Positions 2,828 through 6,335 of a stretch of 64,000 bases of DNA are shown piece by piece. The notes under the pieces were generated by a model. It did no database searches, was not told the DNA's origin, and saw nothing but the letters and a program-made list of their open reading frames with translations. The stretch is from Adineta vaga (Eukaryota; Animalia; Rotifera). The DNA lies in NCBI GenBank assembly GCA_021613535.1, contig CP075495.1:1116001-1180000 (forward strand). Reading direction: 5' to 3'. A program made the position numbers and the translations under genes. Numbering within the stretch: position 1 is the first letter of the stretch; each line of letters begins with the position of its first letter.

Positions 2828-3634
2828 ATGGAGTGTAAAAACATGGCAACTATGCGTTTATTCTTGATAGTTCTATTCATAGGGAACTATATAATGAGTG
2901 TTAACAGTCAACAAGGTTATGATTCCACTTGTACATGTGATTCAGTTTCATCTGGTGTTTGTATGAAATACACATGTGCAACAACAGTAAGATCAGTTAG
3001 TTGTTTCTCTGGCTCCAGTCAACTAACTCTCCACGATGGTACACATAAGTCTTTAGCTCAAATTCATATCGGTGATCAAGTTCTTGTCGATCAACATCAC
3101 ACTTTCGAACCAATTTCATCCTTTATTCATTCAAAACAAGATGGTATCTTTAGTTTCTTAGCTATTCAAGTAAAATCAACAAAATCTAATCGAACATCAA
3201 CTATTCATGTCTCACCTAATCATTTAATCTTTGATTATGATTCTGGTAAAGCACTTTTTGCTGGTAAATTTCATATTGGTGATCGACTTCAATTTATTGA
3301 TGAAAATGAACTCGTACCTGCTGAAATAATTGATATTCGATTAACAAAACAAGAAGGATATTATGCACCATTAACAGCATCAGGTAAAATAGTTGTTGAT
3401 GGAATAGTTGCATCAAATTATGCAACAGTAAGTAATCATGAATTAGCTCATCAAGTAATGGGATTATATCGATGGTGGATCGATTTATTTGGTGGATCGA
3501 AATCAAATGAAGAAATACCATGGATGTTACAAATGATGTTAAAACTTGAAGAGATTGTACGAGTTTGTGCAGGTCAAAAGATTTTTAATAATTACAATTA
3601 TGATGGATTATTTGAAGTATCATCATTAGCCTAA
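2828..3634 (+). CDS. Secreted Hint/Hog-domain autoprocessing protein, copy 1 (signal peptide + 31-aa 4-Cys peptide + Hint + SRR-like tail)
   Basis: Intronless ORF with in-frame ATGs at 2828, 2843 and 2852 and a hydrophobic leader [19 protein letters not shown]. Hint block A is S|[22 protein letters not shown] (Cys at 3002), block B is VSPNHLI, and the C-terminal motif is [30 protein letters not shown] and EIPWMLQMM resemble the SRR helices. Confidence 0.9.
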
Positions 3635-4821
3635 AAACTTTCAGACGATTTTACTTTTTTTTTTTAATATTCTGCTTCATGAATTGACTCTGTGTCTGTT
3701 TATATATTGTCTGTCATCGGTTTTTTCTATATTAATCTCGAAACGTACAGTGTATTTCTCAATAAAGTTTTATCATACTCTTTTAATCGGAAGAAAACAA
3801 TGAATTTTTTTTCTAGATCGAAGAAATTCATATTGCAGAAAAAACAAACTACTACAAATGGTGTTTCTTCCAACATCATTCGCCGATCAATCACAATTGA
3901 AAGTTTGTTTATTTTCTTTCTTTGATTGTGATGGATGCAGAAAATAGAATATATGATCGTAAGAATAATAAAATATCGAATTCGATAGGTAATTAGTCAA
4001 TAAGAAAATGGGAATCTTTGAGAGATTAAGGAGTGGTGTTGAAGATAAATTTATTTTTAGATAAAAATTCGTTTTTATTACGTCTACAGAAATATCTTTT
4101 AATTCAATGAACGTAGCGTTAATTCATTTGTTCATATTAGTTTCAATCAAAGATTATGAATCATCTCGACGTTCTAGTAAATCTGGTACAACAAATATAA
4201 TCGGTTATGAATCAGTTTGTACCTGTGAATCAGTTGTATCAAGTGTTTGTATGAATTATACATGTACAACGAATCAAGAAAGAGCAAGTTGTTTTTCTGG
4301 CTCCAGTCAACTAACTCTCCACGATGGTAAACATCAATCTCTCTCTAACATTCGTATCGGTGATCAAGTTCTTGTCGATCAACATCACACTTTCGAACCA
4401 ATTTCATCCTTTATTCATTCAAAACAAGATGGTATCTTTAGTTTCTTAGCTATTCAAGTAAAATCAACAAAATCTAATCGAACATCAACTATTCATGTCT
4501 CACCTAATCATTTAATCTTTGATTATGATTCTGGTAAAGCACTTTTTGCTGGTAAATTTCATATTGGTGATCGACTTCAATTTATTGATGAAAATGAACT
4601 CGTACCTGCTGAAATAATTGATATTCGATTAACAAAACAAGAAGGATATTATGCACCATTAACAGCATCAGGTAAAATAGTTGTTGATGGAATAGTTGCA
4701 TCAAATTATGCAACAGTAAGTAATCATGAATTAGCTCATCAAGTAATGGGATTATATCGATGGTGGATCGATTTATTTGGTGGATCGAAATCAAATGAAG
4801 AAATACCATGGATGTTACAAA
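3067..4821 (+). repeat. Direct repeat: 3067-3533 matches 4355-4821 (467 bp, offset 1288), no mismatch seen
   Basis: Compared by eye. The antisense ORFs 3294-3521 and 4582-4809 also translate identically. Confidence 0.9.
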
Positions 4822-4895
4822 CGATGTTAGTTATTGAACAAATTATTCGATGGTGTGGTGGACAACAGTTAATTGAAAGCTATATTTCATTATAG
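4107..4895 (+). CDS. Secreted Hint/Hog-domain autoprocessing protein, copy 2
   Basis: Same architecture as copy 1 with the catalytic Cys at 4290. The N-terminal peptide is [21 protein letters not shown]. The signal peptide is weaker. Confidence 0.9.
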
Positions 4896-5074
4896 ATCAA
4901 GATTTAGATTGGAAATAACTTCGAGTATTCTTATCGTTCGTTTTAATATATTTGCTTTTATCATTGAAAATAAAGAATAATACGATTAAACTCCACGCTT
5001 TTCTATTAAAAAACCAGAAGTAGACTGACAACACTCTTTTTCTGAAGGATGCCTTGCCGGCTGTATTTAAGATC

Positions 5075-6335
5075 TTAGAATGCTAATGAAAAAAATGATC
5101 CTATCATCTTCTGAGCAAAATTTTTCATGTCACGTACAAGATCATCTTCATTTTCATATTGTTCAATAGCTCGACTAGCTTCTTCATTTCCATCTGGATC
5201 TTCTTCAACATAATGGTAATTGACTGAATCATCATTATCCCAATTTTCTTGACCAAAATCATCACTTCCTAATTGACGTACAGTCCATATATCAAAACAA
5301 TAATTTGGATTTGTCATATATTCATAAGGTATGTAACAATAACCATTATCGCCCTGATGAATAAGAAAAGAAAATTTTTATAATATTTTCTAAAGTTTCT
5401 TAGTTTATTTTCTGTACCCAATATTTTCCCCAAGAATTTCGAACAATAAAAGAAGCGGATTGATCACTATAGCCAACAGCTAGAAGCGCATGACTAAGAA
5501 AAAGAAAACGCACATGTCAAATATCAATAAAATGAAAAGAAAAAGTTATATTCAATGATACTAACCTGCCATGGGATTCTCGACTTTGTTCATATTGATC
5601 AGGCATTGGTACAACACCTGATTTAGCTGCTTTATCAAATGATGAGAATAGTTTTATACCAAAAGCAAATGGAAAACCTTGTGCTAAACAAGATTTCATT
5701 TGATGTAGATCTGTATCTAGTCGAAAAGCTTCAGTTATTTTGTAATCATCAGCTGCATGATAAAGATCTTCGTAAGGAGTTACATTGACATTTTCAATAT
5801 CATACGGCCACATAGATTCAGCGCAAACACCATATATTTGTAATGTTTCAATGCCATTCGTCATCGAACAACCCGAATCTGTCAATTCACCTGATTGATT
5901 ATTATGTGCACGAGCATTATAATAGATAAAAAGACGACTAACATCAATTTCATAACCACTCGCTTTTTTTGTTAAATATTCATAGGCACCTTTTCATATT
6001 GATGATTATGATATTTTCAAATCAATTAAAGAAAACTTACCTGCAAGAGTATTAGCAACACTATAGAAAGAAAAAAAACATGCATATAGATTTGATGAAG
6101 AATAGGTGTGAAGTTTCATAGTTTACCAACTGCCAATTTTAGATTGATCTTCAACAGTTGTCATATTGGGTCGTAGATCAACTTTTGGTGGTAATTGATC
6201 ACTAGTATAAATAACATGATCGGCAAATGATTGTCGTAATTCGGCTTTTTGTGGCAAGAAATTCGATTCACGAATACCATTTAAACGACATGCACGAGCT
6301 TCAACACGATTTAATAAAAACGTTTTTCGAGGCAT
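5075..6335 (-). CDS. Papain-family (C1A) cysteine protease without signal peptide or I29 prodomain, acidic C-tail
   Basis: Exons about 6335-6127, 6060-6041, 5989-5566, 5493-5418 and 5353-5075. Motifs VDLR, EDQSKIGSC, SRLFIYYNAR, HALLAVGY, RNSWG and GDNGYCYIPY give an intact Q/C/H/N catalytic set. Confidence 0.9.

Follow-up and report, generated by a model that had tools for sequence, protein, structure and literature searches.

What do two small genes of the bdelloid rotifer Adineta vaga make, if each of them joins a four-cysteine peptide of 30 residues to the autoprocessing domain of Hedgehog proteins? The genes, here called gene A and gene B, stand in tandem in a window of 64,000 nucleotides (C2:1116001-1180000 of an assembly of 100.8 Mb in six contigs; positions without a contig name are counted within this window). 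Our answer is that each gene probably encodes a secreted precursor of a small peptide, with a Hedgehog-type Hog autoprocessing module as its pro-domain. We put the probability of this reading at about 55%. Taken separately, release of the peptide by autoproteolysis is quite probable, and a lipid or sterol adduct at the C-terminus of the released peptide is a tentative suggestion, for which we would offer somewhat worse than even odds.

Two transcribed precursor genes

Gene A occupies positions 2828 to 3634 of the forward strand (268 amino acids, aa, plus stop) and gene B positions 4107 to 4895 of the same strand (262 aa plus stop). A preliminary description, made from the letters of the window, had reported open reading frames at these places, and both are there. 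The product of gene A is identical to the database protein P0001, and that of gene B is P0003. Each product begins with a hydrophobic leader, continues with the 30-aa, four-cysteine peptide, opens a Hint domain with Cys-Phe and goes on to the two helices of a sterol recognition region (SRR). The motif GY[DE]SxCTC[DE]SVxSxVCMxYTC, the junction S/CF and the segments HELAHQVM and EIPWMLQ[MT]M, all picked out earlier, are found in both copies. The Hint domain proposed behind the peptide is confirmed by the Pfam profile PF01079, which scores 116.7 bits in gene A (E 1.4e-33) and 111.6 bits in gene B (E 5.3e-32), far above its curated cut-off of 29.7 bits. The matches cover positions 6-211 (A) and 9-209 (B) of the 213 positions of the profile and reach past the Hint fold.

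The leader of gene A (M1-S27, positions 2828-2908) is a predicted signal peptide of canonical appearance. It has an Arg, a hydrophobic core of nine residues and the cleavage site VNS/QQ with small residues at -3 and -1. The position of this site is conserved in an alignment of orthologues, and AlphaFold2 models residues 2-20 as a helix. Cleavage there and at the Hint junction would leave a peptide of 31 aa (Q28-S58), which indeed maps to positions 2909-3001. Its four cysteines (C35, C37, C45 and C50, spaced C-x-C-x7-C-x4-C) and Tyr48 are invariant in 35 aligned homologues, as is the Cys-Phe pair at the start of the Hint domain (C59-F60 in A, C62-F63 in B). AlphaFold2 models the peptide as a beta-hairpin with strands at 31-41 and 44-54, at a predicted local distance difference test score (pLDDT) of about 65. 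In gene B the conserved peptide lies at 4200-4289, directly before the codon of the nucleophile Cys62 (4290-4292).

It had also been suggested that the N-terminal Gln of the gene A peptide could form pyroglutamate. This is plausible, as most type-A orthologues keep a Gln after the predicted signal cleavage site. The dibasic RR site and the NYT sequon pointed out in the peptide of gene B are not conserved in type-B orthologues and therefore carry no weight.

Behind the peptide of gene A, the Hint fold extends over positions 3002-3436 and opens at Cys59 (codon 3002-3004). A helix-loop-helix resembling an SRR or adduct recognition region (ARR) follows at 3437-3574, as judged from the Pfam profile, the AlphaFold2 helices and the invariant residues His208 and Arg215. 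The last part of the protein (3575-3631) is a tail specific to type A, which ends in YDGxFEVSS, conserved in the alignment, and is modelled at a pLDDT below 50.

Two possibilities would have undermined this picture: that the genes are not transcribed, or that upstream exons add a larger known domain. Neither is borne out by three sets of RNA contigs (X1, X2 and X4), read beside the contigs of a DNA run (X14). RNA contigs span positions 2846-3817 for gene A and 4059-5099 for the region of gene B (with gene B covered at 4059-4705 and 4838-5099). They are collinear with the genome and have no joint inside either gene, in keeping with the earlier view that both are intronless. The RNA sets leave positions 1800-2815 and 3832-3958 uncovered, and X14 covers both stretches throughout.

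The transcripts also show where they end and begin. RNA contigs of gene A end at 3740-3817, and one X1 contig adds 11 adenines after position 3817 that are not in the genome. These are the poly(A) tail of gene A, whose 3' untranslated region runs from 3635 to 3817 and contains AATAAA at 3761-3766. For gene B, an X1 contig bears CTTACCAAG ahead of position 4059, which matches the 3' end of a spliced leader, ...ACTTACCAAGAG. The 3' end of the leader, ...CTTACCAAGAG, overlaps the acceptor AG at 4059-4060, and the body of the mRNA begins at about 4061; the first ATG of gene B follows at 4107, 46 nt past this start. This bdelloid leader is 23 nt long. In a genome search with at most two mismatches it has 59 copies, against 0 for a reversed control. 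The 59 exon copies, TGCTTATTACAACTTACCAAGAG, mostly form head-to-head pairs about 154 bp apart and are clustered (e.g., at C5:9.88-9.93 Mb and 10.91-10.93 Mb); presumably, the clusters are arrays of spliced-leader RNA genes. Work cited in PMC1925144 has reported that bdelloids add a 23-nt leader to mRNAs by trans-splicing.

Each gene thus has an intronless mRNA of its own; that of gene A bears a poly(A) tail and that of gene B a spliced leader. Because gene B is trans-spliced to the leader at 4059-4061, no upstream exon adds a larger domain to it. For gene A, the three RNA sets speak against upstream exons with a known domain, as they are all empty at 1800-2815 although the DNA run covers this stretch completely; its orthologues also start at the same Met. 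Transcription, conservation and the ratio of nonsynonymous to synonymous divergence (dN/dS, see below) rule out a pseudogene or an annotation artefact. The proposed combination of a leader, a small four-cysteine peptide and a complete Hog module (Hint plus SRR) therefore describes real, expressed and conserved genes. Downstream of gene B, a skip of 120 bp from 4949 to 5070 appears in RNA set X1. It is not an intron, because the DNA run X14 shows it too; haplotypes or strains differ here by an indel.

The Hog module and its active site

Is the Hog module equipped to release the peptide and to attach something to it? The profile of the family aligns with Drosophila Hedgehog (6td6) at an E-value of 1.5e-21. 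Cys59 maps to C258, the nucleophile C1 of Hedgehog. Ser129 and His132 (3212-3223) map to T326 and H329 of the TxxH motif, which here reads S129-P-N-H132 compared with T326-P-A-H329, with Ser in place of Thr. His101 (3128-3130) stands at the position of D303 (D46), and Asn197 (3416-3418) at that of C400 (C143). The Hog residues that are invariant in the 35 homologues include H101, S129, H132, N197, H204, H208, Y214 and R215.

The AlphaFold2 model, built from the alignment of 35 sequences, has a mean pLDDT of 73, with 85-97 in the Hint core and a disordered tail. In a Foldseek search 6TYY ("Hedgehog autoprocessing mutant D46H") ranks first with a target TM-score of 0.83 and 1AT0 second with 0.82; inteins and bacterial-intein-like (BIL) domains rank after them. 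The SRR is modelled as two helices, 204-221 and 227-249, joined by a loop of only about eight residues. His208 and Arg215 have the spacing of H374 and R381 in Sonic hedgehog (SHH), and the mostly conserved Trp of the second helix (IPWML) corresponds to the HWY hinge (landmarks from PMC7906309).

Two positions depart from Hedgehog. The first is the general base Asp46, in place of which we find the invariant His101; several other Hog paralogues of the same genome also have His there. In Hedgehog, the change D303H (D46H) preserves structure and cholesterolysis and widens the range of accepted sterols (PMC9163320), and D46H SHH is processed in cells (PMC12054796). Since the D46H enzyme is active, His101 is compatible with sterol transfer. 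The second is Cys143, which is reported to be required in Hedgehog autoprocessing, where it forms a branched thioester intermediate (PMC12054796). Here it is Asn, which the alignments present as a fixed, family-specific change. The preliminary description had called the module complete and had assumed cholesterol transfer by analogy with Hedgehog. The first part holds, Hint and SRR both being present; the second is called into question by His for Asp46 and Asn for Cys143.

Several observations weigh against our reading. At the Cys143 position Asn (in the context SNYA) is found in 6 of 6 members in the genome and in 35 of 35 aligned homologues, while Cys (in ASCYA or a closely similar sequence) is retained by most of the genome's other Hog paralogues that extend over this position, two of them having Ser or Thr. 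In Hedgehog, C143A and C143D abolish autoprocessing, including cleavage induced by DTT (dithiothreitol; PMC12054796). The residue before the scissile bond varies (S, A, K, R, P or V), where Hedgehog has Gly. The type-B leader is weaker than that of type A and has no basic n-region, and both the SRR and the peptide hairpin are modelled at a pLDDT of only 52-67. It is mainly the invariant Asn that makes us rate the adduct step low: either the thioester on Cys59 is resolved directly or a different chemistry is at work.

One could argue that the Hog domain merely cuts itself off by hydrolysis. It would then be a self-removing pro-domain or folding chaperone, and a free, unmodified peptide without a lipid would be released. 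Hedgehog's transfer chemistry may be disabled by the loss of Cys143, for which all 35 aligned members have Asn (PMC12054796), and an adduct has never been established for any Hog protein other than Hedgehog (PMC2362128). Simple hydrolysis would, however, need neither an SRR nor a base-competent His, and the family retains both: an SRR-like helix-loop-helix, in which His208 and Arg215 are invariant and the Trp of the second helix is mostly conserved, and an invariant His at the Asp46 position. We consider hydrolysis without transfer rather unlikely, yet it is the alternative to which we give most credit.

Alternatively, the protein might not be cleaved at all and function in its full length. 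It could, for instance, bind sterols after secretion or in association with a membrane, and its N-terminal hairpin would be just a cap. The missing Cys143 would fit such a protein, and the conserved type-A tail (YDGxFEVSS) suggests that the C-terminal part has a function of its own. Against it stand the junction Cys-Phe and the SxxH motif, which are invariant across about 60 homologues; one would expect this only of proteins that make use of the N-to-S acyl shift. We regard an uncleaved product as highly improbable.

How would a self-releasing precursor work? The leader would direct the protein to the endoplasmic reticulum, and a cut after VNS27 would expose Gln28, possibly to become pyroglutamate. 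The 30-aa segment would fold as a beta-hairpin with two disulfides. Cys59, aided by Ser129 and His132, would attack the carbonyl of Ser58 in an N-to-S acyl shift. The thioester would then be resolved by a hydroxyl nucleophile at the interface of Hint and SRR, most likely a sterol, which His101 would activate as a natural version of the D46H general-base swap. A branched intermediate on Cys143 would not form, because that position is Asn. The released peptide, about 31 aa long in type A and 40-48 aa in type B, would be blocked at both ends and lipid-tethered, and may work on the surface of cells or signal over short distances. Gene conversion keeps the processing domain of A and B identical, and the cargo peptides and tails stay distinct.

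In its most specific form, this proposal amounts to a bdelloid class of two-disulfide peptides of about 31 aa, doubly capped by pyroglutamate and a sterol or lipid ester, and made by a Hog enzyme with a His base and without the Cys143 intermediate. That every one of these features holds is unlikely, although we find it worth stating. If it is true, bdelloids would make lipid-tethered peptide signals by Hedgehog chemistry. Hog domains outside Hedgehog are widespread and the adduct on their cargo has never been settled; a cargo of 31 aa is suited to intact-mass spectrometry, and so tiny a cargo would make these proteins the most tractable system for the long-unknown adduct. The family is also a natural experiment on the mechanism of Hedgehog, as Cys1, SxxH and the SRR are kept while Asp46 has become His and the reportedly indispensable Cys143 has become Asn.

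The peptide family and the evolution of types A and B

About 60 homologous proteins can be found, nearly all of them 200-276 aa long and annotated at most as "Hint domain-containing protein". Those with a species name all come from bdelloid rotifers (Adineta ricciae, A. steineri, A. vaga and several Rotaria species), and the remainder from metagenome or run assemblies. As far as sampled, the family is restricted to bdelloids.

That the peptide is not a known Hog cargo domain, as the preliminary description supposed, agrees with our searches. The N-terminal 58 aa (A) or 61 aa (B) match no Pfam family at E-values up to 1. A profile of the peptide alone (30 positions), run on the genome and on 1.84 billion representative proteins, has exactly six significant matches in the genome, all of them immediately before a Hog domain: the two in the window, a second tandem pair on C1 and two singletons on C3. 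No stand-alone copy of the peptide was found in the genome with this profile. Among the representative proteins it finds only Hog-attached members of the family or fragments of them, plus P0063 (401 aa), an unrelated repeat protein in which just 10 profile positions are matched. A weak genomic match at C5:1601390 (E 0.003) contains a stop and on reading is no recognisable relic. A word-based search with the first 58 aa, which could detect candidates of 32-101 aa, returned no precursor without a Hog domain, and a feature search of the ESM Atlas with residues 24-58 gave no usable match. In the literature searched, we found no paper on rotifer Hog proteins or one that links bdelloids with Hog or Hint proteins.

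The two genes of the window represent two types. In type A the leader is followed by Q-x-GYDSTCTC, and the tail ends in YDGxFEVSS. In type B, some 11 additional residues precede the motif, and the tail lacks YDGxFEVSS and ends in ...SY[IFLV]. Both types are present in Adineta and Rotaria, so the tandem duplication predates the split of these genera. In A. steineri even the order is the same: type A (268 aa), type B (260 aa) and then a Peptidase_C1 gene on the minus strand.

The corresponding gene of the window lies at 5063-6335 on the minus strand. It has two short introns, at about 5353-5416 and 5494-5565, which are confirmed by GT..AG joints (5352>5417 and 5493>5566, minus strand) in X1, X2 and X4; X14 is without them. 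A Pfam scan of its single exons gave nothing. Its collinearity with the A. steineri gene in tblastx, at about 70% amino-acid identity, is the ground on which we take it to be the orthologue.

If types A and B are old, why are their Hog domains almost the same? Within a species, A and B share 94-97% of the residues of the Hog core and 43-57% of those of the peptide. Between species, the corresponding values for orthologues are 68-78% and 46-67%. At the DNA level, a tract of 467 bp in gene A (3067-3533) is identical to 4355-4821 in gene B, and its flanks are only 40-80% identical. Synonymous divergence (dS) between A and B is 0.026 in the Hog core; the peptide reaches 0.43 and the tail 1.1. This pattern is that of repeated gene conversion, which is confined to the enzyme part and leaves cargo peptides and C-terminal tails type-specific. 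It is this selectivity that gives the locus its evolutionary interest: conversion homogenises the enzyme only, and the cargo peptides are kept apart.

The second tandem pair of the family, L008 and L009, is found on the minus strand at G000:C1:15037258-15039537. The last 40 residues of the two proteins are identical, so that gene conversion acts at this pair too. The genes flanking the two pairs differ, and we therefore make no claim that the pairs are linked by synteny from a whole-genome duplication.

Selection appears to preserve both parts of the protein. Between orthologues, dN/dS is 0.22-0.35 for the peptide (0.22 for gene A compared with A. steineri) and 0.21-0.27 for the Hog core, with the caveat that the peptide offers a small sample and that dS approaches saturation. 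Judged by these ratios, peptide and Hog core are under purifying selection across bdelloid rotifers.

This result bears on the idea, raised in the preliminary description, that the released peptides are defence peptides, in this case antimicrobials of the beta-hairpin, two-disulfide type. They are indeed small, have four cysteines and a predicted hairpin, and belong to a multi-copy family with diverging peptides. Nevertheless, selection between orthologues is purifying and not diversifying. The peptide of gene A is also about neutral (two acidic and two basic residues), rich in Ser and Thr, and neither cationic nor amphipathic, and because of this composition we find the defence role unsupported. 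The cysteine spacing of protegrin and tachyplesin is likewise unlike C-x-C-x7-C-x4-C. Taken together, an antimicrobial function seems improbable.

Other Hog genes and known systems

Our two genes belong to a genome rich in Hog domains. We count about 39 Hint/Hog loci (54 exon-wise matches) and matches to the Patched family (PF02460) at about 9-10 loci. A Hedge domain (HH_signal, PF01085) is not detectable anywhere in the genome (best E 0.17) and has no match in either of the two proteins. Bdelloids may therefore resemble C. elegans, with many Hog genes and no classical Hedgehog ligand. As the SRR motifs are of metazoan type and the Hog family within the genome is large, vertical expansion seems a simpler reading of the sequences than horizontal transfer. 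Two further Hog loci, L016 and L018 (G000:C1:13329875-13330465 and 13380562-13381068), carry a hydrophobic segment of transmembrane type and a run of about 17 Thr directly before Cys-Phe, and resemble the Thr-rich Thog of Xiphinema.

The best structural match is the C-terminal part of Hedgehog (HhC; 1AT0, 6TYY). It shares with the rotifer proteins the Hint fold (target TM-score 0.82-0.83), the Cys-Phe start, a TxxH-type motif and an SRR helix-loop-helix with conserved His, Arg and Trp. In contrast to Hedgehog, the rotifer proteins lack a Hedge domain, have His for Asp46 and Asn for Cys143, have a residue other than Gly before the scissile bond, and have an SRR loop of about eight residues; type A has an extra conserved tail besides.

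Inteins and BIL domains (e.g., BIL2 of Tetrahymena, 6TMM) share the Hint fold and, close to its end, an Asn at the place of Hedgehog's Cys. In the profile alignment the rotifer Asn falls on the +1 position. The next residue is an invariant Tyr, so there is no splice-junction nucleophile, and an SRR takes the place of an extein. One could imagine that Asn197 also cleaves the chain after itself, as in inteins, and parts Hint from SRR; we give such a cut hardly any credence.

Warthog, Groundhog and Quahog of C. elegans and Lophohog of molluscs and annelids, a lophotrochozoan family (PMC9695228), likewise combine a lineage-specific secreted domain with Hog and have expanded within their lineage. 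The rotifer cargo is far smaller and, by Pfam and peptide-profile searches, unrelated to theirs. In C. elegans, many proteins without Hog also contain a Wart or Ground domain (PMC1636047). Unlike them, the rotifer peptide has no Hog-less paralogues that our searches could find.

In architecture, the nearest precedents come from enoplean nematodes. A survey that defines Hog proteins across eukaryotes, with no mention of rotifers, describes enoplean Hog proteins whose processed N-terminal peptides would be 15, 25 or 34 aa long, and tandem Hog genes of Trichinella, Xhog1 and Xhog2, that share an upstream Cys motif (Bürglin 2008, PMC2362128). Shog1 and Shog2 of Xiphinema and Xhog3 of Trichinella have the same sequence of signal peptide, very short cargo and Hog domain. 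The rotifer family differs from these in its phylum, in a well-conserved four-cysteine cargo found in about 60 proteins and in the Asn that replaces Cys143. The suggestion that the family is undescribed hence holds for the cargo and for Hog proteins of rotifers. It does not hold for the architecture: as cargo of 15-34 aa had already been reported (PMC2362128), a Hog protein with a short cargo is not unprecedented. What is known, then, is the short-cargo Hog architecture; what is new is the cargo domain, the phylum, an active site with Asn for Cys143 and the concerted evolution of the enzyme part.

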